Made by a program: the position numbers and the translations under genes. Positions 1-41,937 of a stretch of DNA of 64,000 bases are shown here, piece after piece; the stretch's first letter is position 1; every line of letters starts with the position of its first letter. Source of the stretch: Selaginella moellendorffii (Eukaryota > Plantae > Lycopodiophyta); assembly GCF_000143415.4 (NCBI RefSeq), contig NW_003314281.1, positions 732,833-796,832 on the forward strand, read 5' to 3'. The notes under the pieces were generated by a model. It searched no databases and had not been told where the DNA came from. It worked only from the letters and a program-made list of their open reading frames with translations.

Positions 1-210
1 CTCTCAGGGTGGTGTCGAGGATCTGGACATAGTTTTGCGGCAGAGATTGTTGCTCGCGAGTCGAGTGTGCGCGGCCATTTGCGGAGCTCCTGATTAGAGG
101 CTGGATCCCAGCTCTCCTCGACTGCCCAAGACTTGGTGCCGTGCCGCCAAGCATCATCGTGAATCTTCTCAAGGAATGTAAATACCTAAAGTAAAAGCAC
201 GTCATGACAA
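1..210 (-). pseudogene. 5' part of a third IPMS/MAM-like copy; continues left of the window
   Basis: Near-identical to 3990-4210, the region encoding ...NYVQILDTTLR plus its upstream flank. Confidence 0.75.
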
Positions 211-523
211 ACAATTTCCTGCTTTTTAAAGAGCGAGGTGACGTAGACGAGATAAATATTTCTTAGTTAAATGGTCTTCCCCTCTTATTTCTTCTCATGT
301 TTCTGTTGCATGAGCAGCCATTTTGTGTGCTTCTTCATTTTAGATGCTTTTGTGGTTTGTGGCTGTCCGAGTCTGTGCACCACCCATTCTGGCCTCCCTC
401 AGCCCAACTGAGAAGAGCCAATTGACCTTCGACGCGGAAGCTCTTCACTGGTCACGATCCTAGGCCCTCTTCTTTCGTTGCCAGGTCGTGTCATGGTATT
501 AGTTGTTGCAATGACGGGACTGC

Positions 524-567
524 ATTCTAGGAGGATTCTAGGAGGATTCTAGGAGGATTCTAGGAGC
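524..567. repeat. 11-bp tandem repeat (ATTCTAGGAGG) x4
   Basis: Directly visible; the last unit has one mismatch. Confidence 0.9.
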
Positions 568-1139
568 GAGCCATGGCTCCCAGGCGCTTGTTGTTGAGCA
601 CGGTGTCATGGGTTTTAGACATCATGGGGACTGAGCGCTTGTAGTTGTCTTCGGCAGTTGCCGGTTGCGCCTGTGAAGCCTTATCTTTTCCTCTTGCCCC
701 GTTTCTAGCAAGACTTCTTCTCTAAAAGCCCATCAACGGTGCAATGCCCTCTGAGCTCGTACTGTGTTCCTAGCAAAGGGTGTGGCCTTGAAACTGCTGC
801 CAGACAGTCTTAGCAAGCGAGTGGCAATGATCCACTTCAACAAATTTCATGCAAAAGTTTCCCAGATCGAATTGTGGTATTGTCCTTGAGAATTTAGGCT
901 TCAAATTTCAAATTTAAGAATTCAGAATTACATTACAAAAGTTTTTCTACAATGCACCCAGGTTGGACAGCTCTACTGTGTTGGAAATTCTTGCAGTCCC
1001 CTCCTCATAAACGCTCTGATTCGATAAAGCTTCAATCTGTCGTTGTTGTGGCTTTACAAGGGACAGGGACAGAGAGAGAGAGACAACACACCTACGCACG
1101 CACAGTTAGAGAGAGAGTTAGAGAGAGAGAGAGAGATAT

Positions 1140-1820
1140 TTTTAGGTCACCGTGGCACCAGTCTGGGGCGATGTTAGCGAGGATTTGTTGGCGTCGCTCA
1201 AGCATTGAAGGAAGGCTGCTCCCTGTCGACTCTATGGAGAGGAATCCCGCAAGCAAGGACGTGGTAGATTCTGGAAGGTATAGTTGCAGTCGTGTGTAGC
1301 CTGGGCAGCGAAAGATGGCATGTTCCACGTCCTCGATCTCCCTTTCACAGACTGGGCATCCCCAATCTCCCCAGGGGGTGGGGGACCGTCACCATGCTCC
1401 GATCACGCTATGGAGATTGTGCACTCTAGTCGGTATCTCGATAGCGTTTGCAGAGCGCATTTCCCGAGTGGGTTGTAGACTGAAGGCCCGATTGTTCGAG
1501 TGATGTTTACGTTGGTGAGATAGTATTGGAATTTTGTCTTGCAATCTGCACCATGAAGCCAGCCTGTAAATGCTAGGCTGATCCAGCTATCAAGGACAGT
1601 GGTAACTAGTTGCAGCATCCAGGTCGACTTTAAGTTTCTTTGTCCATCGCCTAGAGTCTTACCACCAGCCTGTGTTATGACTGTCTGCAAGTATGCATAG
1701 CAGTCCATATGGGAATCGGTTACAGAGACTCCATCATCAAGAAGTGGCGGTTGATGGCCTCGATGTCCGCTCACCCTTTGTCTGGTTGTCCTGGTGCCCA
1801 TGACACCCATGTAAGCACGA
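1140..1820 (-). mobile_element. Degenerate non-LTR (LINE) ORF2 C-terminal fragment
   Basis: Minus strand reads GDWGCPVCEREIEDVEHAIFRC, a C-x2-C...E...H-x3-C zf-RVT-like motif. It is preceded by RNLKSTWMLQLV, which resembles the post-RT 'NxALLxKWxWxL' segment. Confidence 0.5.
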
Positions 1821-1824
1821 AATT

Positions 1825-2349
1825 GCCCAAACCCAATGGCGGTAGCTCTGCAGCCTCGAAAATCTCGCACAAAACCTCTGGATTGGACATGTGGAGGAAA
1901 GGATTGCAATTCGATGTGATCCAAAGAGCATTGGAATGTCATGGCAGCCCAAGGATTTGGCACAGCGGTAGTGAGAACTTGCGAGGGTGTTTTGTTGAGC
2001 TTGTGTTTTATATGGATGTCCCCATTCATGGCTTGTCAGATGGCTCTCCAAGCAGTATCAATGTTGGATTTGACACAACGCGCAAGTCTGCAAATCACCT
2101 CCACTTCACCTTGGCCTTCTTCGTCTCGACCACGATGAGCTCCACTGCCCACGACTCCTGGGGCGATGTCTCGAGGAATCCTGCATCGTGATTCACGTCC
2201 ACTCGCAGCTTGGCCAGGTGCTTGGCACTGTCGAGCTTCTGCTGGATGGAGAAGCACACTCCCAAAGATTGTTCGCTGTCTCTAAGGGTGGTGCTGAGGA
2301 GCTGGACATAGTTTATGGGAAAGATTGGTGCCATGCCGCCAAGCATCAT
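1825..2349 (-). pseudogene. IPMS/MAM-like synthase pseudogene, copy A (truncated, frameshifted)
   Basis: YVQLLSTTLRDSEQSLG, QQKLD.AKHLAKLRVDV, VICRLARCVKSNIDTAWRAI and DIHIKHKLNKTPSQVL lie in different frames; paralogous to 3040-4155. Confidence 0.85.
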
Positions 2350-3039
2350 AAATCTTCTTAAGAAATGGAGTAGATGTCATGCTTTTTGAAGGGCAAGGCT
2401 TGTTGAGCCCAGAAGAAGGCGAAGAAGATACGACAGAAGGCGACAGTAAGCAGGCTCTGCTTCACTGGCTTTACGGCGGCAGCTGCGCGGCTTGCAAAGC
2501 TACGAGTTATTCTGCAAACGTCGAAGCTCTGGCGTCCGTCAAGAAAGCCCACCTTGACGGTTACCACGGATGGGCTCTCGGTGCATCGTGCGACGCAGAT
2601 ACGGGATGTGCGACGTCTGCCACATCAGCGACGAGGGTACCTGCCGGTGAGCCGTCTCCCCGGGCTCCAGGTTCCTTGTTGTCCCCAACGGAAGAAGCAT
2701 GCAAGCTTCTTCGTGCAAGCCCTTGTTCTGCAGACCGGGATGTTTTCATCTTCCAGCAGCCGCTGATCCGAGTGATCACCCACACAAAAGGCCTGCCAAT
2801 GACAAGTTTGATTTCGAGCAGCAGATCAAACCGTGGATGAAGCGAGCAGTCACAAGGATGATTCAGCCTCTGCGGGTGACCAAGGACGCGTACCAAGCGG
2901 TGACAAGTACAGCGAATTGCAAGACAGGCCCCATATGTCTGCCGTTTTTAGGGGGATCAAATCCATCATGCCAGCGAGTGAACAAGTAAGGAAAACTTCT
3001 TTCCTTTGTTATTGTACTGAACTAGCGTTAGATTGCTGC

Positions 3040-4155
3040 CCGAGAGTCTTCCACTAAGTACAAAGTTCCTTCCAAGAAACTTGGAGAGAACTTGTCAAGC
3101 TCTCTTACCGCTTGACTTGTTGGATATATGTGCTTGGTGTCAACCCCGTGTAAAGACCTTTCATGAGTGGATCTCTACTGCAGCACTTCACCGCCATCAC
3201 CACCTAGATCGCTCACGAGTGTCGACCAACCAATCAAAGTCTAACAGTTCTTCACAAATACCTCCTCGAGTGACGTGTTCCCAGCTCACTCTCCAATGCC
3301 ATTCATGGAGACTTCTAGCCCCGCAAGCGCTGCCGCGAGCGTGTTTGACGTGGTGAGGCCAAGATCATTGTGGCAATGACAGGAAATGGTTACTCCCTTG
3401 ATTCCCCGGTCCCCTGTTTCACCCGATTGACGAGGCTGGCGATCTCGGATGGAAACAAGTAACCAACAGTGTCTCCAATCCCAATGGTGGTAGCTCCGGC
3501 CTCGATTACGGCCTCGAAAATCTCGCACAGAAACTCTGGATCGGATCTGTGGAGGAAAGGATTGCAATTCGATGTGATCGAAAGAGCATTTGAATGGAAT
3601 TTATCTCCCAGAATCCTCAGCACCGAACTGGATGTCGTGGCAGCCCAGGGATTTGGCATAGGCCACCATCTCCGCGGCAGTGGCGAGAACTTGCGAGGGC
3701 GATTTGTTGAGCTTGTGCTTCATGTGGATGTCGCTGGTGGAAATGAAGGCCAGGATTCGCGGCTTGTGGGCGTATCGGATGGCTCTCCAAGCAGCATCAA
3801 TGTCAGATTTGACACAGCGCGCGAGTCCGCAAATCACTGGCACGTGTTGTTCTTCCTCGTCTGGACCACGATGCAGCAGATCTTCGCCTTGTTTGTAGCT
3901 CCCGACCTGGCGAGCGATGAGCTCCACTGCCCGCGACTCCTGAGGCGATGTCGAGCTTGTGCTGGATGGAGAAGCACACTCCCGGAGATCTCTCAGGGTG
4001 GTGTCGAGGATCTGGACATAGTTTTGCGGGAGAGATTGTTGCTCGCGAGTCGAGTGTGCGCGGCTGTAAATCTGGCTATTTGCAACTGTGGAGCTTCTCC
4101 TCGACTGCCTAAGACTTGGTGCCATGCCGCCAAGCATCATCGTGAATCTTCTCAA
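3040..4155 (-). pseudogene. IPMS/MAM-like synthase (DRE-TIM barrel) pseudogene, copy B
   Basis: [47 protein letters not shown]|[52 protein letters not shown]. Internal deletion after the DRE motif, a frameshift and a stop; no C-terminal regulatory domain visible. Confidence 0.9.
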
Positions 4156-5904
4156 GGAATGGAAACGGATAAAACTAGTAAATACCTAAAGTAAAAGAAT
4201 GTCATGACAACACAGGCAAAAAAACACCTTGGTTTATTGAGTGGGTAGAAATTACACCTTTTGCAAGTGATGAATCACATAAATTCTCACAACCACACTA
4301 TTGTAAAGCCTATGATAAAAGTAGATTATTGTATAGTAAATTATATGTAATATTTCAAATCCTTTAAAAATAAATTGCAATTTATCTTAATTCAAATTTT
4401 TCATTTTATATTTCATATATTTATTTCCTTAAACATATAATATGCATTCTAATAAAAAAATTTATTTTTAAAATTAAGAAAACATTATGAGTAAGATTTT
4501 AAAATATTGATATTATTATACTGTATGAGGTCCAGAGCCATATACTCACAACCCCAAAAAATATAAATATAAATCTTTAAATATAGTTAATATTTACATT
4601 TTATATATACTCTTTTTACTTACTTATGTAATTTACATTTTTTCTTTTTCTTTTTAAATTTTTTTAAATTTGTTTTATTAATTTTTATTAAAGTTTCAAT
4701 AGTAAATAACCTCTAAATGTATGATCTTGACATGATCACAAGTTTGTTAGTAGTCACATTTGAATTGTCCTTACACCTTCATATTACCTATGAGTTGCAC
4801 TTGCTCAGCTCCAAAAACAGTTCATAGTCAAAAGTTGAGTGCTACTGTTAAATCCAATCAAATAACATAGCTAGTGGTGTCCAAGTTTACTTCTTGAGTC
4901 ATCCAAATTGTTGGTTGCAGCGAAAATGTCTTCATTGTCACCATCATCTCGACGTTGACTTTTAAAATGTGCTGCCATACCACATAGAGGGGAATGTTTT
5001 GCTGACTCATGGATTTTCCAGCATTGTTGAGAACATTCATATAGTTAGTGGTGGTAGAACCCCAGAAAGGTTTGGATGCTGTTTTCTTTTGGCTCTTGTT
5101 TCCTTTTTGTGGCCACAGGGAAGTGGATTGCAAACAGGTCTATTGGACGATAGGTTTCTTGCTTGTTTGAGCCACCATTTTTTATGGATCTCATTTTGGG
5201 AGGTGTTTAATTTTATTTAACGTTTTTGTTAATGTCCAAAAAATTATGCATTGCTGACGTAGTTGAATTTGCTAAATGTGACATCATAGATGTTTTAGAA
5301 TATACAAGGAATTGCACCAAGAGCCCACCTTGGTCTAGATTGAAATTAATCCAACGGCTACCAAAATCTCATTACACTAATATTAGTATACGGCATCATA
5401 GCAATACACTTGCCCTCACAACTACAAATAAAGAACTTAATAAATTATTCTGAAGTAACTATTTTATTATCACAGTAAAATTATTCACTGAAACCATCTT
5501 TGACAACGGCTTCTTTCAGCCCTCTTCAATATCCACTCGTCCTTCTTCAAGAGCATTTTAAATAAAGCAGCAGCTGGCGAAGGAAGTATCAGCATTACAA
5601 TATCGTGACCATGCTGCTGATCAAGCTGGTGAATTGGTTGATCGTACGCAGAACCTTCAGCAGTCGAAGATTCAAAACTCTGGATTCGAACATACTTCGG
5701 CCATTTTACAAAACGATGGAGATCCTTCTTAGGTGGGCGTGCTTCGGCCTGCTTTCGAACAGAACATTCACAACCTTATGAACCTGAAGAGCAGCCTCAG
5801 CAAATGCAGCAAGTTGAACAAGGAAGCTACATACCTTTCTTGGCTTAGATGAGAACCAGCATTCGGCTTCCCACTTTGGAGCCTGTATTGCCTGTTCATA
5901 CCAT

Positions 5905-6250
5905 CGGAAGACGCTTTTGCAGTTTCGCCTTCCCAAACCCAAACCCAAAACCCCTAGCTCTGGAGTTTGTGACAAGGGCACGGCTGATCTCCACGAGCTT
6001 GCAAGCATGCAGCGCGGCACCATAGCAGGATTGGATCTGCGCGAAGATCAGTTTGCTTGCTGCCCAACTCAAGAGCTGCTCGGATTCCACATCGCTAGGT
6101 AGAGGCAGGACAATCCACGACTCCATCTTGCAGAGCAGCCACTACAGGAATCGCTACTTGACAAACAAGCTGGTCCAGATGTATGGCAGATGTGGAGATG
6201 TGGAACGAGCCAAAGCCGTGTTCGTGTTCGACCGCATTGTGAATCTGAAT
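5905..6250 (+). pseudogene. Truncated PLS-class PPR gene fragment
   Basis: LKSCSDSTSLGRGRTIH...LTNKLVQMYGRCGDVERAKAVF, after which homology is lost. Confidence 0.75.
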
Positions 6251-6929
6251 TTGAAAAAGAGAAACGCCCTTTATGATTTTTTCTGGGAGTTTGGGGTCAA
6301 GATCAGCCTGTTAGTGTGTACATTGTACGTAATTACGCAACAAATCAATCCAACATGAACCTGGATTAAGAAGTAAACAGCTCCCCTTTATGTTAACATT
6401 GCTGCTAGAATGTTTTGTTAATTGTTTTCGTTTTTGTGTCCTTAATGATCTACCTTTTGCTTCAGCTTGATTTAGGTTTCTTCAGGTTCGGATGCTTAGA
6501 GTTTTTTTCTGTGTATACGTACAATGTACATATCATCAGATGGCTAGAAAAACTCAAACCTTGAAATAGTAACGTATTAACAGTCTGTTTAGATTGTTGT
6601 ATGTGTTTTGGCTGTTATCTTGCTGTGAAAAATGAAGGATGTTAATTTGTCATGCTAAAAAACTGGAGGATGCTGATTTCTCCCTTGGTAATATAATAAG
6701 TTTGTTTTATACTATTCTGGTAGTGAGGCTGATGAACTGTACATTGTACATGAAGATTTCAGATGACAAAACCTCTGTAACTGTCCTCAACTAATGAGGA
6801 CAGAATATTTCTGGACAGCCCAAAGTTATGGTGCAGACTCAAGTTGGAGATGATCTCTTAGTCATTTTTCCAGAGCTGCTTCATGATAAGAGCTTGCAAG
6901 AGTTGGAGATTTTGGAGGTGGCCAGTGTC

Positions 6930-7058
6930 TTTGACTACTCCCCTTTGGATATCCAGGCCTCCAAAACTAAGTTTGACTACTCCCCTTTGGATATCCAGGC
7001 CTCCAAAACTAAGTTTGACTACTCCCCTTTGGATATCCAGGCCTCCAAAACTAAGTTT
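6930..7058 (+). repeat. Perfect 42-bp tandem repeat x3
   Basis: TTTGACTACTCCCCTTTGGATATCCAGGCCTCCAAAACTAAG x3; reads FDYSPLDIQASKTK. Confidence 0.95.
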
Positions 7059-8787
7059 ACAGACCTGCCATCATTGCCACCTTTTGAAGCTACACAGTTT
7101 TTGGAGTAGGGCATAGCATTGGTTTAGGAAGATCAAGACCTTAGCATGGTGCAAGATCTCCCCCCAATGGCCTTTTTCTTTTGCAATGAAGATCTAGCCC
7201 AAGTGTCAACACCAACTCCCCTGGCATTGTGTCTTACAATTTTGGATGCAAAAGACTAAGAGATCTAGCTGAACTTGGTAGAGGATAACATTGCAGATCC
7301 TTCTCCTTTATTTGGAGAAGTTTCCACTCCATAGTTTGTGGTTTATTTTGATGGAGCCTAGTGTCCACAATATCGACAAGGCAACATTGGTGTATGGATT
7401 ATCAACAATCAAGAGAAGTAGGCTCCAAGCTCTCCACACATTTGCCAGTCTCATCTACGAATGAGACTGAATACTTGGCCATGATCAATGCCATGCAATT
7501 GACAAAAGAACCCAAGCTCCACCATGTCCAATTCTTGGGAGATTTACAGTTAGTGACTTGCCAACTCAATAGTGAATACTAGGTTTGGCAAGGGTGCCTC
7601 AGAGACTTGTGGCAGTCGACAAACATCTTGAAGACACCACCTTCATCAGCATTCCTTGCAAGGATAATTTTTTGGGTTGATTAATTGTCACATGATGCAA
7701 TCATAACTGTATAGGAAGCCAAGAGCTTGGAATCCCAATATGTGGCCTCACTTTGGCTAAAATCCCAACCAAAATGGAGACTGAGACAAAGCCAGATCCT
7801 TGTTGCCAACAGATTTTCTTATCTAGAGACAAAGAACTATATCTATTTCTAGTGCTCTCAATGAGGAGGATGTGATATAGTTTATCGATTTACTCTAGAG
7901 CTTCAAGGATGTGTTTACATGGGACTCCCATGTGTTCCTATGGACACTCTTGTGCACAAGATCAAGTTCTTTAACAATTCAAATACATGCATGATATAAT
8001 CTATCTCTTCATCTTGCAGCCAAGGAAGAGGTCCAAAAGCTCTTGGCAGCAAGGTATATTGTGTCCATGGCTCATTCAAATTAGGTGTCCAAAATTATGC
8101 TGGTTTGAAAAGCCAATGGTAAATGTGGACTTCAAAGGATTACATATTGTGATCATATCTCAGACTCCATTTGTGGATGAGATCATCAATGAACTTGCTA
8201 GTTTCCCTTGTTATTCCTTCATGGATGGCTTCTCTAGGTATAACCAAATCATTGTGAATCCACTGGACAGAGATAAAATGTCATTTTGTACTCCTTGGGG
8301 GATCTTTGCTTATATATGATTCATTTTGGCTTTTCCAATGGTGGAGCAACTTTCCAATATCTTATGACATATGCATCTATGTAACATTGGCACAACTTTG
8401 TGGGTGTATATTGATGATCTTTGCTTAGCCTTACATTCCCTTCAACAGCATCTAGAGCACTTTTCTCTCATTGCTGATGACATTGTATTGTGTTAAATCC
8501 AAACAAATATAAATTTAAAGTATCCAAAGGTAAGTTGCAATCCCTCTCTATATAAACAAGTGTAAAGAGATCTCTTCATCCAAGCCACCAACTACTATGC
8601 ATTAGCTATGATGTTTTTTTGGGCAAACTAGCATTTTTTTTTTTTTTTGCAGTTTTTGCCCAATTCTAGAGCATCTTTGATAACTATAGTCCATAAGGAT
8701 GTTATTTTTGTGTGGGCTGATAATCACTAGGCTGTGTTTGAGTTATTTAGACAAATTTTTCAATTGACACTGATCTTGTAGCCATTG

Positions 8788-9287
8788 TGTAAACAACCAT
8801 AGAGAATGATTTGAGAAATGAGCTATGAGGTTCAAATATAAAAGAAAATGGCTCATAAATAAGAGTGGACTTTGTTTTCCAATCAATTAAGAGTTTTCAA
8901 ATATTTAGGGTTAAACATTCTTGGGTTTGAGTAGTATTAGGTTGGGTGATTTCTTAAGAAGTCTAAACTCAAAATCTTAGTATTAAAGGGGTCTTGAATC
9001 TGATTGTATTGGTTGGCTAGGGAAATCATACCAACTGTTGAGATTGACATTTTGTAGGTTTAGTTTGCACTAGTTAGGCTATTAACTTCTATTCATGAGG
9101 GTCTAAACTTGTAGAAAAATATAGTGGATTGTAGGCAATCAAAGAAAAAAGTTCAAGAGACAATCTATAAGAGTTTAAATATAGAGAGACAATTTATAAA
9201 AGTTTAAATATAAAGGGAAAAGGTTTATGAACGAAAATGCACCCCCTTTTTTCAATTGGTTAATGGTTTTGGGATATTTAAGGTTAA
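8788..9287 (+). mobile_element. Degenerate Cassandra TRIM copy (LTR, internal region, partial second LTR)
   Basis: Aligns by eye with the reverse complement of 10122-10713, including a decayed 5S segment at ~8908-8963. Confidence 0.8.
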
Positions 9288-10121
9288 TTTTCTTTAGGTT
9301 TGAATAATATTAGGTTGAATAACCTCTCAAATTCAAGAGATTTACACATTAATACACACATGGCCATTACAAAGTTGAAGAGGAAGTTTTTGGCATTTAT
9401 TATTGTTAGCGTAAGAATGATAAAACCCCATTCTATGTGATTTATTTTATACCTTGATTTTGAGAAAGAATGAGATGCAAGCATGTAATTGTCAAGGAAA
9501 GATTACATCATTTTCCAAGTTCAATTTAATATACTAACCTTCTTCTCCACAAGGTTTTATACACTTTAATTGTTTTGATCTAAAACTTTAATCTACAATT
9601 CTTTTTGAACATTACATATCTAAGTAAGGCTTTGGTTGCAGTTGCTCAACAAATATCTCTCATTTTAGCAAACTTTCAGAATATAATTACTTATATTCAT
9701 ACTAATAAGGCCCCTCTAAAGCTATCTTTGGAGTAGCACGCATAAAATTTTGTAGTTACACTTGTTTTAATAAAGTTCTTTATCAGTCTAACCTTTACTA
9801 CTTACTTGTGGCAATAGATTACTTCTCAAAATGGGAGAAAGTTATTATATTGTGCATAATAAATCATTTCTTAGTAAGGTGTTCAAGACTCTTATTAAAT
9901 CAATTTTTAGCATGTTTACAGTTGATCATCCTCAACATAGCATAGACACTTATCTACTACATTGTCAATATTTCATACCATATATAAGGTTAGTATTAAC
10001 ATAACTTTATTCTTTTATGTTTATAAGCAAAATATGATCCTTCCAATGGAAATTTAAATTTTGTCCATCCTTTTGTGTCACAATATGTGTTAGAGTTCTA
10101 GTTATTGGGGGAGGAGTAACT

Positions 10122-10713
10122 TGTAAGCTCCTGAGTTTGGACTTCCCGGGAGGTCACCCATCCCAGTACTATTCAAACCCAAGGACGCTTAACTCCAACT
10201 ATCCCAAGACCCTTAACCGATTAGAAAAGGGGGTGCACTCTTGTTCATGGGCCCTTTCCCTCTATATTTGAACCCCATGGACCGTCTCTCAAGTCGTTCC
10301 CTTTGGTTGCTTACAATCCACCACGCTTCCCTGCAAGTTCACGCCCTCGTGAACGGAAGCTGAGAGCTGCAGCTCTCCCGAGAGCCCCACTCTCTTGACA
10401 CCCTACCCCTCGGGTCGAGCCCAGCGGGAGCAAACTGGACCAGCCAGATGTCAATCAACATGTGGTGTGATTCCCTTAGCCAACCAACAGAGTCGGACCC
10501 GAGACGCTCCGATACCAAATGTAAGCTCCTGAGTTTGGACTTCCCGGGAGGTCACCCAGCCCAGTACTATTCAAACCCAAGGACGCTTAACCCCAAATAT
10601 CCCAAGACCCTTAACCGATTGGAAAAGGGGGTGCACTCTTATTCATGGGCCCTTTCCCTCTATATTTGAACCCCATGGACCGTCTCTCAAGTCGTTCCCT
10701 TTGGTTGCTTACA
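10122..10713 (-). mobile_element. Intact Cassandra-type TRIM (non-autonomous LTR element with 5S rRNA-derived segment)
   Basis: Two 194-bp LTRs (10122-10315, 10520-10713) with TGTAAG...CTTACA ends and 5 mismatches. Perfect TAACT TSD, tRNA-Met-type PBS TGGTATCGGAGC (10506-10517) and a PPT. The left LTR carries the 5S-like GTTAAGCGTCCTTGGG...TAGTACTGGGATGGGTGACCTCCCGGGAAGTCC (right LTR: GGCTGGGTG). Confidence 0.95.
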
Positions 10714-12543
10714 TAACTCTAAACACAAGTTTGGGAGTTTTTGAAATTGGATGAGACTTTTGGCAGCTGTGGACCATATCTATATATAAAAAGTCTAACT
10801 CAAGGCTTGGCAAGACCTTGAGATTTCTTTAACACCATTTTAGCAAAGTGACTTGGTTCTTTTTAAGGATTTATACATTCGTTTAAGTTTACACTAAAAT
10901 AGTTAAATCCCTACATCATTGAGCATCATAAAAGAGATAATTGTTATATCTTAGTGGATTTAATAACTAATAGTTTGAGCATGTATAGCATTACAACCAT
11001 CTTAAGACACTCTAATGTTGAATGGTTTTAACAATAATTTTCTTCTATTTTTTTCTTCTCTTTTCTTTTATTTCTTTTTGCTCTTTCACTATATTTCTAT
11101 TGCTCTTCTAAATTTTAAAAAGTAGATTTAGGCTTGGATCATAGTTTTTCTAAGTGGCATTAATTTTGATTATCTAAAAACTCAAGTTATTTTAGGTTTT
11201 GCAATGGTTATTACACTTTATCTTTCATTACACTTTTCACTTTTATTGCTTGCATTTTTATTTCTCTATCCATTTTGCCGTATGGTACCATAGTTTAACT
11301 TAACATTCTTTAGTCATTTACAAATATAAAGTATTCATAGAGATGGTAGCAAAGTTTCAATAGGAAAAATGTAATTATCTCCATTTAAAGCATTAATTTG
11401 TTTGAATATTATAGTTTTAACACATGTAATAGTGGAAGTACAAGTTGTTAGTGGTTAGTTGGGCCTTCTGTGCATGTATCCAAGTTCATTCCACACTATG
11501 GCTTTTTTTCCTATTTATTTCTTTTAATTTTTAATGGCTTCTTTTAGCAAAGATCTTGGGTTTGCCACATTTCCCAATATATTATTGCAAAGGAAATTAA
11601 TTTAACTAATTTTCTACTAAGTTCTTCCTTTTTTCTTCAAATTCTACATTTTATAATCTTTATGATTTCTTTCTTTTTTCTGTACGTTATAGGTTTTCTT
11701 CATGAAGTTGTTTGATCCACCTCTGGTCATTTATTGCAATGCATTTTAAAGTACAAATATTTTTAAAATATTCAATTCAAAGAATATTTCTAGAGCATCA
11801 ATTCAAGGGTTTAGGACAGAATAAATGATTGATAATGTATTTTTGAGCTTGATCTAAGCTTTCTTTGAGTGTGTTTAAGAGTGATAGGTATGTTATCTAT
11901 GTATCAACTCAAATAACTATTGACAAAGATGATGCAATTGCTATAAAATATTGTCATAGTTGTCAGTATGTCTAAATATATATTTGAAAATATATGGGAG
12001 AAGGTTCTAATCCACATATGGTTGCATTCAAACCATTATACCACTATAACACTATGCCTTAAAGACATGTAAAAAATTACATAAATATTTGAGCATTATC
12101 TAAAGAATGATATGTTGCATTAATTGTAAATTGATCAAATTAATAATACATATTATCCCTAAAATTTCTATAAATGAAATCTGACCAGATGTTAGGATTG
12201 GCAATAAGAGCAATAAAAGTTGCACTATACATCATAAATGCCACTATTAACTAGATTTAATTATCCAATTATAGTCATATAACATCAATCAATTACACCA
12301 ATTGCTACTCTAAAATGTAAGCAATTAAAGAAATAAATGATCCATTAAAGTTTAAATATAAAAGGAAAGAGCTTATGAATAAAATTGCACCTTATTTTTC
12401 AATCAATTATGGATTTAAATACTACTAGGTTGGATGAGAGGTTTCGTGTCTGACTTTATTAATTAGTTTAAAGGAATCATAAAATATGTTGAGATTGATA
12501 TGTGGTATATTCAATTTTCTTTTAGTTGGGCTCGACCTGAGAG

Positions 12544-15500
12544 TGTAAGCCACAAATTTTTCCTTTCCAATTTGTCAGCTTACCTCATCTATCCAACTAA
12601 TATTGCCTTATCTTCTTAGCTAAGTTCCCTCGCCAAGGTTCTCGCCTATTGTACCAACTCCTACTTAGTCCTATTTGGTTTCAATTATTCACTACACGAG
12701 CAATGGAGCATTAACCATCCACCCACGAATTCTTAAATATCTCCCAATCCCCCTCCCCAGGTTAGATTGGACTTAAGGTTCGGCTACACTCCCTACATGC
12801 ACAAGCAGGCAAACACACCAAGCCTCCAGGTTTCTAACATCCCTTGGTACAATAAGATTTGATCATAAGACCCTCTAAATCCCAAGCCTTGGGTGCAACA
12901 GTTGCTTCAGGATGCCAGGGCGAAACACCGTGGCCTAACGGCCTGGTATGGGTACCTCTACCCCCCCACTTCCATCCCAAAGGGGAGGCCCAACCCCTTA
13001 AGAAGGGTGAGGACTAATGAGCCACAAGGTACTCAAGTGGGGCACCACTCCATATGAGCTGAGAGCATTGTAGTCGGTTTCCCTTCCAGGAGTGGGAGTT
13101 GCTCTTGAGCACTTCCTTCAGTGGCCCCTTCGGCACCACCCGAGTCCATACTCACTCCCACTTAAGGCCCCTCAGTCCTAGTCTCAACCTCAAATCAGTT
13201 TGGAAGCACCACTGGAGAGTTCCTTCAAGACTGGTTTCTGAACCTCACTATCCCTACTATACTTTTGGAACCCCCTGTAGCCCCCCCCCCGGGAGACACA
13301 CGCTTTGGGCTTTCACCCCTTGACCTGTATTAGTACTCGAACTCGGTTTCAGATTTGATCTCGGACTCGATTTTGGACCCGACGGACTTGGTCTCAGACT
13401 CGATCTCGAACTCGACCTCAAACCCGATCTTAGACTCGATCTAGGACTCGGTGTCGGACCTGATCTTGGATCTCGGACTCTATCTTGAACTCGGTCTCAA
13501 ACTCGGTCTTAGAGTGGGCCTCAGACTCAATCCCGGACTCTATCTCGAACTTGGTCTTAGAGTCGGTCTTGGACTTGATCTCGGACTTGGTCCCATTTGA
13601 TGAACTTTTTAATCATTTCGGTCGTGCTTTCGGGGATCCTTTAGCCTACGACAAATTGGGGAGTTAGTTCCTTACAACTCCACCACCCATAGAAGAAGTT
13701 CGATGCCCACATCGAACGTCTCTTTTTAATCTTACGACTTGTTGACCATGTCTCCGGGGGCATCCCCCCACTTAGCGGTGTGCCTAAGTTAGCCTCCCTG
13801 GCCAAGAGCCCATGACAACGGAATATAAATGTCCCTATACCCCTCACGTCACCGAGCCTTAGTATGGGGTTGGGACTTGAACCCAACCTTGCTTTACTAG
13901 GGGGTTGGGACTCGAACCCAACCTCGATAGAATATGTATACAGATTCGACATCTCCACGAGGAGTCAGGTGTAGTTCCCTACGCCTGGTCGACTTAGCTA
14001 ACCCATGCTAATTAGCTTACCTTCGGTGCGCCTTCGGGTCCCAACATATGTCATTGCTCAACTTAATAAATTGATACTTTTAATTGAACTTTGCATAAGT
14101 ACATAGAGTTCTGCCATGTAGAAATTCTTTCACTAGATCTCGAACATTCGCTAGGTTCTCTTTCGGTTCCTATATTACTTTGCAGTGTGGAAATCCTTTC
14201 CACTTCACATGGAACTCTCTCATCTCGTGTTTTTGTCACTTGCTTTTGCGTGCATTGAGGATGGCCTCAACTTTGTATTCCTCTTCCCCTTGGATAACCT
14301 AAGGTAAAGGTTTCACTTGGTCCTTGCAAAGTGGATCCTCAAAGTACGGCATGAGTAAATTCACATGGAACATTAGGTGCATCTTCCCCATCTCTCGAGG
14401 AAGTTGAAAACGGTAAGCCACTTTACCGATTCGTGCCTCAATCTCATAAGGCCTCGTGAACCTGCTTAAAAAACTCAAGATCAGTTCATTTCCAAGAATA
14501 TATGCATCTTTACCTTTGGGTCAACTTTCGACTGATCCCACTTGGTAGCCTTAGGTTCTTGGTGTTCAATCACACCTTCTCCCCAAGTTAGAATTCTACT
14601 TTTTGGCACTTTTGGTTTGCATACTTGATTTGCCTTTGTTGAGCCCATTCTAAGGAATCCCTCATTAGATTCCAAATGTTGAGCCTTTCTACCGTGAATG
14701 CCTCCATTGCAAGTAACTCTCCATAATACTCGGCCACACCGAGTTCCATAGGACCTTCAATAACTCATCCATTGATGACTTCCCATGGACTCACCCCAAT
14801 ACTCGAGTGTGGTGAGTTGTTATAACACATTTTCGCAAGTCCCAAATGACTTACCCAATCAATCTAGTCTCCCGAGACATAGCATCACAAATAATCCTCC
14901 AGCTACCTATCCACCCTTTCCATTTGTCCGTTTGTCAAGAAGCGTTAGTGCCATCAAACTTGACTTAATACCCAATACCTGTCTATGGGTGATAAGTTGT
15001 GCTAAATTTCAACTTGGTGCGATATTGTTCCAGGAGAGTTTTCTAGAACCTACTGGTGAAGATTTTATCTCGATCTAAGATGATCTCTTTTGGCCTTCCC
15101 CGTACTTGAACCACTTGTTCAAAGAATAGCTTCGCCACACCTTCCGCATCCACTTCTGTTGTGGTGGGTATAAAATGTGCCATCTTCGAAAATCAGTCCA
15201 CCACCACGAATATCGCATTGAACCCCTCACTTGGGGGGAGTCCCATGATGAAGTCCATCGTAAGACAATTCCACGGGTGATCTGGAATTGGGATGCTTTG
15301 TAACAAGCCTTCATTAGCCTTAGTCATAGCTTTGACTTGCTGATATGTTAGACATGTCTTTACATAGTCTTGGATATCCTTAGCCATATCTGGCCAATGA
15401 TACTTCCTCTTGAGTAAACCCATCGTCTTGGGCACTCGGCCGTGTTCTGCAAGAGGTCCATCATGACACTCTTTTAAGATTACCTTCCTTAATTCCCCTT

Positions 15501-18500
15501 CTGGAACATACACTCTCATTTGTTTATAATAAATGAGTCTATTGCGTTTCCTATAACCTATTTTTTCTTCCATTGGCAACTCACCTCTTTGGTGAGTTTC
15601 TTGTGCCTCTTGGTTCCTCAGCAACATTTATTATGCTAGACCATTGCTCTCATACATTATTCGCACATTGTCCCAAAAGGTTGCTATTGTGCTAGATATC
15701 GCCAACTTCAAGCTTGCTTTTTGACTTAGAGCATCTACCACGATGTTGCTCTTCCCAGGTTTATACAAAATCTTGCAATCAAACTCAGCCAAAGCGTTAG
15801 CCCACTGACCTTGTTTCCCTCTTAGGTCGGGTTGTGACAAGAAGTGTTTCATTGCCACATTATCCATGTAAATTTTGAAATGCCTCCCAAGGTAGTGTCG
15901 CCACTCCTTGAGAACTTTGACCACCACAAATAATTTCTTCTCGTGGGCAGGCCATTTTCGCTAAGCCTTGTCAAACTTCTTCAAGAAGAATGCCACTGGG
16001 TGGTTGTCTTGCTTCAAAACTACACCCAATGCAAAGTCCGAAGCATCCAGTTTTACCTCAAAGTCCTTACCAAAGTCGGGTAACACCAACATGGGGGTCT
16101 TCCTCAACTTCCCTTGAGGTGGACAAATGCCGCCTCGCATTCCGCTATCCATACCATCTTCCCTTTACATGTTTGGTCTGTTAAGGGCAAGGTTATTCTC
16201 GAATAGTGTTTGATAAACTTTCGGTAGTAGTTGCATAGCCCCAAGAATGCTCTCAACTCATGTACATTCGATAGTCACTCCCATTATTGGATTGCTTGGA
16301 CCTTCTTAAGGTCCTCCTTGAGCCTGTCCTTGCCCACCACGTACCCGAGAAACTTTACCTTTTGTTGAGTAAAATCATATTTGCTCTCTTTAGCATACAA
16401 CTTGTGTTCCCTTAGTTTCTCAAACACCTTCGTCAAGTGTTTAGCATGCTCCTCTAGCATTTCGCTATAGATTAGGATGTTGTCAATATAAACGACCACG
16501 AAATGATCCAAATATGGTATAAAGATGTGGTTTATCAGTGTCGAAAACATTGCTAGCGCATTGCACAGCCCAAAGGGCATCACTAAAAACTCGAAGCTCC
16601 CATACTTTATTCGACAGGTTGTCTTCTCGACATCTTCCTCTGCTACCCTGATCTGGTAGTATCCTGCCCTTAGGTCAATCTTTAAGAAGTATTTTGCCTT
16701 TCCCAACCTATCAAACAAATCCTTAATCCTTGATAAAGGGTGTTTGTTTTTCTTTGTATACTTGTTGAGCAATCAGTAGTTTATGCACATGCACATAGAT
16801 CCATCTTTTCTTTTCACAAATAACACCGGTGCCTCATACAACAACTTGCTCAACCTAATATACCCTTTGTTCACCAACTCTTCTAGTTGGCACTTGAGCT
16901 CTTTGAGTTCCTTTTTGTTCAAATGATAGAAGGGACGAACCACTGCTTTAGCACCCTCAACTAACTTAATCTTGTGTTCTATTGGTTGTGTGGGGGGCAA
17001 CCCCACCGGTAGCTCCTTTGGCATGGTATCCTGGAATTGGTCCAACACCCGCTGGATTACTAAAGGTACTTCTTCCATTCCCATCTTTTATCACTCTTCA
17101 CCGAGAGTACACATAAAAATGCTACCTTAATTCCTTTAGTGAGTTGTCTTCTCGTGGACACCAGGTTTAAGCAGGAGTCTTTGGCCTTACTTTGTCCTAC
17201 CTTTAGATCTTGGGCCTCCACCCTGGATCGTTCTCCCCAGGCATTCGCCAGTACCACAAAGTTCCTCCCTTGTCCATGCAAAGCTACTATGAACCGATTG
17301 AACCAGTCCATTTCAAAGATTATGTCAAATCCCGCTATATCAAATGCAATGAAATCCATGTCTACTTTCTATGTCCTTATTTCGACTCTCGCTTGTCGAA
17401 GTATCTCATCGGTGCTTTGGCTACCTTGAACAAACTCTATCATCCTTGGTTCACCCAACCGCTGCACCGTTAGTCCAGCTTGCTGGATTATATCTACAGC
17501 TACAAAATTATCTGAAGTACCCATGTCAATAAAGATCTTAACAAAGCTACCTCCGAGCTTCCCTTGAAGGGCTCGTAGATGTCACGAATGACTCTCTACC
17601 AAAGTTGCTTGCGTAATGAGTAACTTTAAGCTAAGGATTAGATCACATACCTCAATTTGGATTTCACTTGACTTAATGGCCATATTGGATCTGGCCTTTT
17701 TCGGGTAGGGACATTCCCTCGAAAAGTGTCCCGCTTCATTGCAGTTGTAACATATGTTGTTTCCCACGCTGCTAACAGACTTGATATTCTTATCTATGGG
17801 TTTGTCTTTTTCTGCTTGACTCCCCCACGTACTTGCTCGCTGGCCACCAGATTTGCCTTTCCGGAACCCCGAGGACTTATTCTTAGAGAAACTCCTCTTG
17901 AATTTCCCTTTGCTATATGTTCCCCTTGGTTTGGCCCCTTTGCTAAATGTGGACCCCAACCCTGTCGTGTTCCCCTTTCGCAGGTTATCATTGAAATGCA
18001 TTTTGATAGCCACATTCAAATCTTCTTTGTAATTGGTCAGGTTCCAACACATCACCTCACCGCAAGCCCAGGTTTGCAAGCTTGATATGAAGGCATGGAA
18101 CGCATTCATATCACCCATATCCGTGACAAGTATCCTCTTTGCCATAAACCTATTCACATATTTTTTAATGGTTCTGGTTTGCTTCAGCCTACTCAGCTCA
18201 TCCCTTAGGTGCAGAGTAGCATTTGGATGAACATAAGTCACATAGATCCTTGCCTTCATCATTTCCCAAATGGCCACCGGTCCTTCGTTGGCCTTTGTTA
18301 TTCTCCACCAAGACTTAGCATTATCTGCGAAGTATAGCTTTGCACATAAGACTTTCTTCGAGCTCGGTAACCGCAATGCTCGGAAGTAGTCTTCCATATT
18401 GTGAAACCAATCCTCCACCACCTTATAATCATTCACTCCTTTGAAGACTAGTGGGGGTTTTGGTTTGTACTTGGGAACTGCCTAAGGGACTGATTCCACT

Positions 18501-36220: not shown

Positions 36221-38029
36221 TTAGTTTATTGCTAACCTGGAAACAAACACATGAACAAGCTCGGGAATACCGTGAGCAAACCTGCAGTTGACTCCATTAC
36301 GACAGTGCCCCTTGGCGAAGTATCTACAGAGCCGCGTCTTGTAGAATGGGTCGTGAAGATCCATTTCGTCACTGGCGCTTCCATCGTCCGAGAAATCTTC
36401 TTCCTCTCTAATAATGTAGTGTTCGTCCCAAAGCTTACAGGTGCACATTTGTATCTTATTCCGGTACTCCATGCCACAAGTATAACAAAACTCGTAGCCA
36501 CACCTATAGCACCAGAACACCAAGTATCGTACACAAGAAAAAGAACGAGGCAGAAAAACCATACCTGCAAGTCATGTGGTAGCACCCTTCCAAGAGCTCA
36601 ATCATCCACCTACACTTCTTGCACTGCCTCCACTTCTGGTTCTCCGCGAGCCTGTAGAGCTTTGCGTCCGCGGCATCTTTTAAGTCGAGAGGCAGCCGCT
36701 GGTATCCAGCACAAGTCGAGAATGTATGCCAGGGAACTCGGCAGTCGAGGCAGAAGTACCTTTGGCAAGCTCCACACAACTTCCGGGGCTTGGGGTCGAG
36801 GAAAGTCCTTCTATCCATTAAGTCCGAGCAGTTTGGATACGGGCAGTAGACTCTCTGCGCGTCAGGGATGCGCTCCTCCTCTATCTTCTTCATGAAAACT
36901 TTGAGAGCCGCCTCGGACAGCAGCTTCTTGCACTCGCCCTCGGTGAACTTCTTCGTGCACTCGACTTGCGGGCAAGCCACCGGGAAAGTCCGCCCGGTTG
37001 TCACTGTAGCCTCGACGTGCTGCTTCACGCACGATGAGCAAAACTTGTGAGAGCACTCGGTGAGAGTGTAAATGTCCGCATCCTGGACGTCCTCGAGGCA
37101 AATGACGCAGTGAAACATGGACCTGCTGCTGGAAGCCGTGTTTTGCCTCTGGCTGATCGAGACCGACTTCGCTACATTGTCTGCTGGCCAGTTCTCTCCG
37201 TGGAGCGCAAGGTTGATATCAAACGACTCGAAACTATCGATGAGCCCGATTGCCTTGTCATACTCGGCCATCATAGCCTTTGTAGAGACCCTCCAATATC
37301 CCTTGATCTAGGAAATAAAAAGAAACGAAGCGTTTGAATCAGGAAAGTTGGCGAAAGAAGAGAAGAACAACCAACCTGGTTATGGAGAGGGCCAGAGTCC
37401 GTGTAAGCAATGATCTTGCGAGCTCCCATGGACTGAGCCGACTTGAGAACGTCAACGAGAGCATAGTACTGCGCGACGTTCTTCCCGGTGGGAGTTGCGA
37501 CGTATCTCTTGAGCTGGAGGAGCTCGTTTCCACTGGAATCCCTGATCGATCCACCAAGAGCGGCACCAACAATCACACCACCCTCGGACACCGAGTAGCC
37601 TTTGAAATAAACCCGGAAGAACGTCCCCGTGATCCCCGACTGGAAAGGCCGCTCGTACAAGTCACCGTTCTCCTCCCACTCCCTCTCGTCCATCTCATCG
37701 ATCTCGCGAGCCATGGCGTCGTCGTGGAGCAGCTGGTCCGCGCTCTCGTTCAGCTCTTTGAGCAGCTTGGCCGCTATCTCGCGATCCTTCTCCTGCTTCT
37801 GGAGCGCCTCCAGCTCCATCTCCTGGACGCGAATTGCCAGCGCCGCGTCGTCCTCCACGCCCAGGAGTTTGTTCCTCCATCCAGCTAGGCCGAGCAAGCA
37901 ACGAGAAACCATCCGCCCAAACACAAACAGAAGCAAGCAATGGAGGACAACTACAACGAGCGCATCGCCCACCGACATTTGGAATGCAAGATCGGAGTCG
38001 GAGGCGCTAGGCGCGACCGCCATCGCCAT
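36221..38029 (-). CDS. RBR E3 ubiquitin ligase with RNase H-like domain and C-terminal CCCH finger, copy 1
   Basis: FRVYFKG...IRD...AQYYAL...TDS (RNase H-like), RING1 CVIC...CSHKFCSSC, IBR YCPYPNC, RING2 CKKC...GCYHMTC|RCGYEFCYTC, then YKTRLC-x7-C-x5-C-x3-H. Confidence 0.9.
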
Positions 38030-40218: not shown

Positions 40219-41937
40219 ATGCTATCGAGGAATAACCTTGTGGATGTTTGTCATGAGAAAACTGAGAGAAGATCATATGAAGCTTTGCTCAGTCAGTGCA
40301 AGTCGATCACAACAGGCAGGAAACTCCACCAAAGCCTTCTGGAGGCAGGATATCTTTCTCAATCCGATTCATTCTTTGCCAACCTTCTCATACGCATGTA
40401 CGGAAGGTGCAACAGCATCAGCGATGCTAAAAACATCTTCGATTCAATCTCTAAGAGGAGCGTTTTCTCCTGGACTATCATGCTTGCCGCATATGCCCAG
40501 AATGGGCATATCCGCGAGGCGAGAGATATCTTTGACAAAATGCCCTCGACACTCAAGAATGTTGTTTCATGGAACTCAATGATTTCTGCATACTCTCAAG
40601 CTGGGAATTCTAAAGAAGCCTTTTGCATATTCAAGCTCATGGATCAGGAAGGGATTCGACCAAATGAAATTACTCTGATTAGCATTCTGGATGGATTCTC
40701 CAGTTGCAATGCCTTAGAACAAGGCAAGAGTGTTCACAAGAGCATTGATTCCACTTTCATTCTTTGTGACGTTCGAGTGGGAACTGCGCTGGTCGACATG
40801 TATGGAAAATGTGGAGATATTGGAGAGGCCAAGGCTATGTTTGATGCGATGCGGACCAAAAACGAGGTGACATGGAATGCCATGATGGCTGCATATGCCC
40901 AGAACGGGCATTCCAACTTGGCAATCCGGCTGTTCCAGCTCATGAGCGTCGAAGGTGTCAAGCCCGACGACGCTAACTTTGTGAGCGTGTTGGAAGCTTG
41001 TGGTGACGCTGGAGATCTAACGGTTGGTCGACTGATTCACAGTTTTGCTACTCAAAGTGGATACGAATCAAACCTAATGGTGGCAACTTCGCTGCTAAAC
41101 ATGTACAGTAGATCGAGAGAGTTTGATCGGGCAAGAGAGATTTTTGACAGTGCTGAAAGCAAAGACGTTGTTTTGTGGACTGCTCTGCTGGTCGCATATG
41201 TCCAGAGCGGGCATGGCAAGGAAGGTTTTCGAGTTTTCGTTTGCATGGACCTGGAGGGATTTACACTGGACGAGGCTTGTTTCATCAGTGCTCTCGACGC
41301 TTGTGGGAGTGTCCTCGCTGTGAACGAAGGAAAACTCGTTCACGCGAGCTTGCTAAGTGACTATAAATATTATCTTAGCACCAAGATCCAAAATGCGCTG
41401 GTTCACATGTATGGACAGTGTGGTCATCTCAGAGAAGCGAGAAAGATCTTCGAGGACATGAGATCAAGGGATAAAGTGTCGTGGAATGGGATTCTCACGG
41501 CCTATGCCCGCCACGGGCAGATCCACGACACTCTCGACTTGTTCTTGAGAATGAACCTCGAGGGCATACCACCCAATGCAATAACTTTCACAAACGTTCT
41601 CTCTGCTTGCAGCCATGCAGGCAAGCTCTCCAAAGCGATGTTTTTCTTGGCTTCCATGCAAGGCGACCATGGAGTTTGCCTCGAGAAAGACCACTACGCG
41701 TGCGCCGTCGATCTGCTCGGACGGCTGGGACAGCTCCACGAGGCAGAGGCTTTGACGGACGGGATCTCCAGTGGCATTGGATGGATGGCGTACCTGAGCG
41801 CTTGCAAAGCTCACGGGAATGTCGAGGCGGCAGCGAGAGCTGCTGATAGAGTTCTCAAGCTGGATCCAGAGAACTCGGCACCTTACGTCTTGTTCTCGAG
41901 CACCCAGGGAGCTAGTAAAAATCTGGAAAGCTTTTAG
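40219..41937 (+). CDS. PLS-class PPR protein with E-like C-terminus, no DYW
   Basis: 572-aa intronless ORF of P-L-S repeats ending HYACAVDLLGRLG...ACKAHGN...DPENSAPYVL. Confidence 0.93.
   Translation: MLSRNNLVDVCHEKTERRSYEALLSQCKSITTGRKLHQSLLEAGYLSQSDSFFANLLIRMYGRCNSISDAKNIFDSISKRSVFSWTIMLAAYAQNGHIREARDIFDKMPSTLKNVVSWNSMISAYSQAGNSKEAFCIFKLMDQEGIRPNEITLISILDGFSSCNALEQGKSVHKSIDSTFILCDVRVGTALVDMYGKCGDIGEAKAMFDAMRTKNEVTWNAMMAAYAQNGHSNLAIRLFQLMSVEGVKPDDANFVSVLEACGDAGDLTVGRLIHSFATQSGYESNLMVATSLLNMYSRSREFDRAREIFDSAESKDVVLWTALLVAYVQSGHGKEGFRVFVCMDLEGFTLDEACFISALDACGSVLAVNEGKLVHASLLSDYKYYLSTKIQNALVHMYGQCGHLREARKIFEDMRSRDKVSWNGILTAYARHGQIHDTLDLFLRMNLEGIPPNAITFTNVLSACSHAGKLSKAMFFLASMQGDHGVCLEKDHYACAVDLLGRLGQLHEAEALTDGISSGIGWMAYLSACKAHGNVEAAARAADRVLKLDPENSAPYVLFSSTQGASKNLESF

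Follow-up and report, generated by a model that had tools for sequence, protein, structure and literature searches.

Does a cluster of gene copies derived from 2-isopropylmalate synthase (IPMS; EC 2.3.3.13), lying at one end of a 64,000-nucleotide stretch of Selaginella moellendorffii DNA (hereafter the window), represent a lycophyte counterpart of the methylthioalkylmalate synthases (MAM; EC 2.3.3.17) of Brassicales, and is any of its members functional? Three copies of an IPMS-derived gene, here called A, B, and C, all on the minus strand, are found within window positions 1–4210 (Table 1), confirming a first-pass annotation that had proposed at least three tandem copies. Window positions 1–14125 match S. 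moellendorffii scaffold GL377585.1 with 100% identity (L001 14125–1). Direct repeats tie 1–210 to 3990–4210 (94–99%) and 1853–2314 to 3511–4024 (86–95%), pieces of the copies match the Pfam HMGL-like domain (E 1e-8 to 1e-14), and a tblastn search with the canonical Selaginella IPMS as query returned E-values of 7e-50 for copy B and 6e-10 for copy A, values that place the IPMS likeness of the copies far above chance. Sequence comparisons favor, with somewhat better than even confidence, one joint explanation: the region would be a local duplication cluster of a single neofunctionalized S. moellendorffii IPMS paralog, and copy C would encode a 2-alkylmalate synthase that leucine does not inhibit and that acts on a 2-oxo acid larger than 2-oxoisovalerate.

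An Intact Gene at the Window Edge

Both copies that lie fully inside the window are broken, as had been noticed from the letters alone, and a functional member had been suspected just to the left. An intact gene, copy C, is found there, with only its first 157 nt inside the window. Fitting its 452-residue product (P0267) to the DNA gives nine exons and eight introns of 52–123 nt, all bounded by GT-AG. The product consists of an HMGL-like domain (PF00682, 2e-81) and a post-HMGL HCS_D2 subdomain (PF22617, 1e-27). The LeuA_dimer domain (PF08502), which scores 1e-29 in the canonical Selaginella IPMS (P0370), was not found in P0267. Nor did a tblastn search with canonical residues 455–624 recover a relic of the regulatory domain in the window and the 10 kb to its left (best E 0.4), in line with the claim that no copy carries one.

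Introns 1–8 of copy C correspond in position and phase to introns 1–8 of the canonical Selaginella IPMS gene, which has 12 exons. Copy C arose by DNA-level duplication of a plant IPMS gene. Its coding sequence breaks off after 16 codons of exon 9, at the very point at which the canonical gene enters the LeuA allosteric domain, and because of this cut it has no Leu-binding LeuA_dimer domain. At 170 nt further downstream begins a cysteine protease gene in convergent orientation.

A second intact copy (P0387, 454 aa) lies on scaffold GL377651.1 among the same neighbors, and we read that scaffold as the other haplotype of the copy C locus. On both scaffolds copy C has an uninterrupted reading frame and intact splice sites, 16 in all. 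Between the coding sequences of P0267 and P0387 there are 17 synonymous and 8 nonsynonymous differences (dS 0.054, dN 0.0078, dN/dS 0.14; binomial p against neutrality 3.8e-6), and both scaffold copies evolved under purifying selection. Of 226 near-invariant columns (identical in at least 17 of 18 rows of a streptophyte reference set), 187 are unchanged in copy C. The first-pass annotation had spoken of a MAM-like family. A live gene does exist, but it is just one, present on two scaffolds read as haplotypes and accompanied by two dead fragments.

P0387 corresponds to RefSeq XP_002988001.1, named "2-isopropylmalate synthase A isoform X1," a name that is probably a misannotation; the gene is present in public databases under this automatic IPMS name only. 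A literature search found no paper on a lycophyte case, on Selaginella IPMS or MAM, or on these locus tags.

Remodeling of the 2-Oxo Acid Pocket

With residue roles for the catalytic set taken from a published account (PMC8468904), alignment to the Brassica juncea MAM structure 6E1J indicates that copy C keeps the equivalents of R89, D90, Q93, E227, T257, H288, H290, and H388. Five changes separate MAM from IPMS: L143I, H167L, S216G, N250G, and P252G (PMC8490860; pocket positions are given in MtIPMS numbering). The reference residues of IPMS and MAM given in the first-pass annotation agree with this paper and with the aligned sequences. Four of the five MAM-defining changes (H167L, S216G, N250G, and P252G) occur in P0267, in P0387, and in copy B, for which alignment bears out the Leu/Gly/Gly/Gly quartet read earlier from the translation. 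The motifs quoted at that time for copies B and A are all present on the minus strand. Copy A reads T-A-I-G-F-G at the N250/P252 site (~1843–1826). The same residues in copy B, together with the Gly-x-Gly of copy A, indicate that the pocket changes are older than both duplications.

Bona fide IPMS rows in the alignment carry His/Ser/Asn/Pro at the four sites, from Chloroflexota and streptophyte algae through Marchantia, Adiantum, and Selaginella to angiosperms. Rows from Ginkgo (P0396) and Nymphaea (P0401) labeled IPMS deviate at one or more of the four and, judging by the alignment, look like diverged paralogs. Beyond the quartet, copy C has HCH in place of the plant HCQ, and the IPMS motif DGMLKxKGTYEIM is replaced by DGILKNRATYEILSP, both as in MAM.

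An AlphaFold2 model of copy C has a mean pLDDT of 79, with most of the barrel at high confidence. MAM structure 6E1J is the best match of copy C in the PDB by sequence (E 1e-138) and by fold (TM 0.87–0.88, normalized to the target). It is also the best solved structure for exon 1 of copy B (E 1e-26; the top bacterial IPMS reaches 5e-13).

Origin and Evolutionary Rate

In the maximum-likelihood tree copy C falls inside streptophyte IPMS (support 100/99) on a stem branch of 0.81–0.84. Brassica MAM groups with Tarenaya IPMS2 within rosids (98/93 and 99/92), with or without the pocket columns, and truncated Asteraceae proteins nest in asterids. Because copy C falls in streptophyte IPMS apart from the Brassicales MAM, its MAM resemblance is most likely convergent. 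The independent MAM-like origin proposed in the first-pass annotation is thus favored by the trees, although an approximately unbiased (AU) test does not formally reject a joint clade of copy C with Brassica MAM (p 0.31). The test does not reject a clade of copy C with Selaginella IPMS either (p 0.29). The intact paralog otherwise has the properties by which the proposal was to be checked, namely absence of the regulatory domain, four MAM-type residues, a place within plant IPMS by introns and tree, and purifying selection.

P0267 is 62% identical to Selaginella IPMS, 60–63% to IPMS generally, and 56–57% to MAM. The Selaginella IPMS itself shares 83–84% identity with its counterparts in Marchantia, Adiantum, and Closterium. 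A search for truncated relatives with short pieces of the protein returned only ordinary IPMS fragments, at no more than 48% identity.

Two other origins were considered and set aside. A horizontal origin from bacteria, raised by Chloroflexota LeuA proteins whose identity of 55–59% comes near the plant IPMS level, is rejected on the eight introns shared in position and phase and on the tree. An ancient "MAM-like" clade uniting the Selaginella gene with fern and conifer sequences had weak support (79/85) that was lost once the pocket columns were dropped, and this grouping probably reflects convergence.

Comparison With Known Systems

The closest known parallel to copy C is found in Brassicales MAM (MAM1/MAM3; BjMAM1-A, 6E1J). 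These enzymes, which act on 4-methylthio-2-oxobutanoate and its elongated homologs, are likewise IPMS-derived and end just before the LeuA domain, and they share with copy C the four pocket substitutions, the HCH metal motif, the DGILKNRxTYEILSP motif, and the catalytic residues. Unlike MAM, copy C appears to be of separate origin, branching from the base of land-plant IPMS; it also keeps Leu143 and carries, ahead of PVICG, an acidic insert of 13 residues. Missing from it is the P-x-Y-[IV]-P...D motif that IPMS and MAM alike have in front of NYVR. The canonical Selaginella IPMS (XP_002992921.2, P0370) resembles copy C in the positions and phases of the eight introns, in its TIM-barrel and HCS_D2 architecture, and in overall identity, but differs in having three more exons (encoding LeuA_dimer), an H/S/N/P pocket, and HCQ, and in evolving slowly (84% identity to Marchantia).

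The quartet has recurred independently in other IPMS paralogs that are divergent or have lost the regulatory domain. The same or nearly the same L/G/G/G residues are found in Adiantum nelumboides (P0334), Cephalotaxus ("MAM-like" P0269/P0328), Cryptomeria (P0275), Asteraceae (P0351/P0352/P0379/P0394), and Phaseolus (P0417, a FEN1-clade protein), and the fern, conifer, and Asteraceae proteins share HCH as well. Loss of the regulatory domain often accompanies the quartet in other lineages, and the fern and Asteraceae look-alikes end before that domain as copy C does. The trees do not establish these look-alikes and the Selaginella gene as one clade. Since the quartet occurs in lineages of other or uncharacterized activity, it marks a widened pocket and not MAM activity as such.

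Recruitment of IPMS has been repeated in eudicots, where it gave rise to MAM, apple citramalate synthase (CMS), tomato IPMS3, and patchouli 2-isobutylmalate synthase (IBMS) (10.1101/2021.09.28.462264; PMC7826400). Apple CMS, tomato IPMS3, patchouli IBMS, and the legume FEN1 clade all resemble copy C as recruited IPMS in which leucine feedback is lost or disabled, and apple CMS and SlIPMS3 lack the regulatory domain as copy C does. Unlike copy C, PcIBMS1 keeps that domain and has Leu143 changed to Met, and SlIPMS3 is described as a true IPMS (10.1101/2021.09.28.462264). The recruitment of IPMS into specialized metabolism is a textbook example of enzyme neofunctionalization, and the cases in the cited papers are all eudicot. 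A lycophyte case would show that the conversion of IPMS into a broad-pocket alkylmalate synthase is highly repeatable across the ~400 million years over which plants have diverged. Such a case would also point to unexplored chain-elongated metabolites in Selaginella.

Proposed Function and Alternative Explanations

We hypothesize that the copy C enzyme joins acetyl-CoA to a 2-oxo acid of greater bulk than 2-oxoisovalerate. The chemistry would be of the usual Claisen type, with a metal held by Asp/His/His and the equivalent of His388 serving as base, and leucine feedback inhibition would be absent. A larger substrate combined with freedom from feedback would open a chain-elongation route, for which copy C may catalyze the committing step and so feed specialized metabolism, as MAM does in Brassicales. 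A broader proposal, which we hold possible rather than probable, is that Selaginella runs a leucine-independent 2-oxo-acid elongation gated by copy C, yielding homologated amino or keto acids for undescribed lycophyte metabolites, and that Leu/Gly/Gly/Gly with loss of the regulatory domain is a predictable solution reached repeatedly in a lycophyte, a fern, conifers, Asteraceae, legumes, and Brassicales. If this is true, the quartet together with domain loss could be used as a sequence signature for finding such pathways.

Several observations weigh against this interpretation of copy C. The estimate of constraint comes from one pairwise comparison with 25 differences, a limit set by the failure to find an ortholog of more than 61% identity in other species; indeed, among 5.8 billion clusters, no protein more than 61% identical to P0267 was found beyond its own cluster. 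The introns of the two C copies differ by 2.3%, below the dS of 5.4%, which makes the neutral rate uncertain. Leu143 is retained (ICGLARC) with no change to Ile. A legume protein related to the FEN1 homocitrate-synthase clade carries the quartet too, which therefore does not identify the substrate. Finally, genes for pathway partners (aminotransferase, isopropylmalate isomerase or dehydrogenase, P450) were not found in the window and the 10 kb to its left.

One alternative is that copy C is still a genuine IPMS acting on 2-oxoisovalerate, merely freed from leucine feedback and boosting the supply of leucine or of iso-C5 units. Feedback-free forms of IPMS are documented (10.1101/2021.09.28.462264; PMC12994207), and copy C lacks the regulatory domain in the manner of tomato IPMS3 or a banana splice isoform. 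Curated equivalog models divide on the point, with NF002086 (2-isopropylmalate synthase) barely passed (546, cut-off 532) and TIGR00973 failed (503, cut-off 598.7). Because all four of the H/S/N/P residues that are invariant in aligned bona fide IPMS are replaced, and the rate of the whole protein is strongly accelerated, we consider this explanation unlikely. A further IPMS derivative without a regulatory region, apple MdCMS, which branches outside typical IPMS (PMC7826400), suggests that copy C could instead be a citramalate synthase joining pyruvate to acetyl-CoA and providing a threonine-independent route to 2-oxobutyrate, isoleucine, or esters. Glycine at three positions would enlarge the pocket, however, and specificity for a substrate as small as pyruvate would be unexpected (judging from PMC8490860), so that a citramalate synthase seems very unlikely.

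Decay of the whole cluster must also be weighed, with copy C functionless or on its way to being so and its MAM-like residues fixed by drift in a released duplicate. That two of the three copies are dead, that orthologs were not found in other species, and that copy C sits on a long branch would all fit. Nevertheless, the frame and splice sites are intact on both scaffolds, dN/dS is low (0.14, p 3.8e-6), all catalytic residues and most near-invariant columns are retained, copy B has accumulated far more unique changes than either C copy, and the four pocket changes equal those of functional MAM residue for residue. This account is very unlikely as well, if anything a little more so. A common descent of copy C and Brassicales MAM, brought about by contamination or by transfer between plants, is exceedingly improbable. 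It could draw on the AU result for the joint clade and on the MAM structure being the best PDB match by sequence and fold, but there is no canonical plant IPMS in the PDB to compete with that structure. Two separate scaffolds carry the gene among Selaginella neighbors and with introns of Selaginella size, its identity to MAM is below that to IPMS, and MAM is firmly nested with Tarenaya IPMS2 in rosids. The evidence is best accommodated by a broad-pocket, leucine-insensitive alkylmalate synthase, put forward at the strength given at the outset.

Pseudogenes B and A

Copies B and A are partial duplicates of the already-modified gene that have since decayed: copy B is a pseudogene, and copy A an older, more decayed one. 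Alignment of copy B to copy C with an exon mask reveals a 10-nt deletion at ~3989 that shifts the frame after LRD, a 59-nt deletion at ~3953 that removes DIAKRLARLRVDVIDAGFPAT, a change of the intron-1 donor from GT to AT at 3604–3603, 1-nt deletions at ~3409 and ~3144, a 9-nt deletion taking out ARQ, and a CGA to TGA stop at 3288–3286. Homology to copy C stops at ~3063, within intron 4. Copy A has at least 10 deletions (3 to ~86 nt), which remove RILAFISTS and a 10-residue motif, as well as several stops, and the acceptor of its intron 1 reads AT instead of AG. The copy breaks off within exon 2, and its Pfam HMGL-like match (1.4e-8) covers 2095–2349. Divergence from copy C is ~5.5% for copy B and ~14.6% for copy A, and the two C copies are 1.85% apart over the same stretch. 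Over the same 1.1 kb, copy B has 55 unique changes and the two C copies have 7 and 12.

A processed (retro-copied) origin of the two pseudogenes was considered and is excluded. Introns 1 and 3 and a piece of 4 survive in copy B, and intron 1 survives in copy A; this retention of parental introns identifies both as unprocessed duplicates. Intron 2, 70 nt long in copy C, is missing from copy B, where the exons meet precisely at ~3334/3333, a clean intron loss inside a dead DNA-level duplicate. No counterpart of copy B was found at the matching place on the second scaffold.

An exhaustive profile search returned a single near-identical protein, EFJ26150.1 (gene model SELMODRAFT_413264, UniProt D8RNW2; 500 aa, window 1403–4140). 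This "pyruvate carboxyltransferase domain-containing protein" is a chimera of out-of-frame pieces of copy B, spacer, and copy A.

Table 1. Layout of the IPMS-derived array and positions of the pocket motifs of copy B.
Feature	Position	Strand	Remarks
Copy C, start of intact gene	1..157	-	ATG 157–155; codons 1–52 of the 452-aa P0267, ending ...NYVQILDTTLR
Copy C, rest of gene	left of window, L003 10001–11890		9 exons
Copy C 5' flank	158..210	-	Duplicated along with the gene; matches copy B flank 4166–4210; repeats D3/D10, 94–96%
Spacer between copies A and C	211..1826		No IPMS-like sequence; syntenic with L002 8610–9929
Copy A pseudogene	1827..2349	-	ATG at 2349; exon 1, intron 1, part of exon 2
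Spacer between copies B and A	2368..3062		Unrelated to IPMS
Copy B pseudogene	3063..4140	-	ATG at 4140; exon 1 through the first 46 nt of intron 4
Copy B 5' flank	4141..4210	-	Derived by duplication from copy C 5' flank; repeats D3 and D10
RILAFISTSDIH in copy B	3724..3759	-	Leu at MtIPMS His167 (BjMAM1-A Val182)
11-residue motif in copy B	3604..3636	-	Gly at MtIPMS Ser216; Gln at BjMAM Glu223; catalytic Glu227 equivalent retained
10-residue motif in copy B	3462..3491	-	Gly/Gly at MtIPMS Asn250/Pro252 (BjMAM Ala253/Pro255)

Other Features of the Locus and Window

The spacer between copies A and C contains a CT-rich microsatellite (~1095–1150) and a short tandem repeat (~520–560). Within the B–A spacer, positions 2435–3060 form a repeat that occurs twice on the second scaffold (L002 3450–4076 and 7139–7711). 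Directly downstream of copy A, an open reading frame (ORF) on the minus strand (1092–1400), reading EIEDVEHAIFRCPGY and, over 1092–1328, EIEDVEHAIFRCP-like, resembles the zinc-finger tail of a plant long interspersed nuclear element (LINE) ORF2 and may be a LINE remnant, although Pfam gave no match.

A biosynthetic gene cluster was considered and is rejected, as pathway partners were not found in the window and the 10 kb to its left. Larger ORFs in the window encode PPR proteins, a kinase, an AP2 factor, RBR ligases, and parts of retroelements, and the left flank holds the cysteine protease, a 711-aa protein, and a polyprenyl synthase. PPR-repeat genes or fragments occupy 6053–6358, 40219–41937, and 58464–63899; at the right end of the window, three or four long ORFs of this kind lie side by side. 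A gene combining RNase H-like (RVT_3) and RING-IBR domains is present in two copies (36251–38029 and 45808–46822). Retrotransposon remnants include a reverse transcriptase-like ORF at 7987–8319, judged by eye, and an ORF with gag and zinc-knuckle matches at 17582–18436 (Pfam 1e-10 and 4e-7). At ~6930–7060, within an ORF at 6828–7109, a 42-nt tandem repeat encodes FDYSPLDIQASKTK three times.

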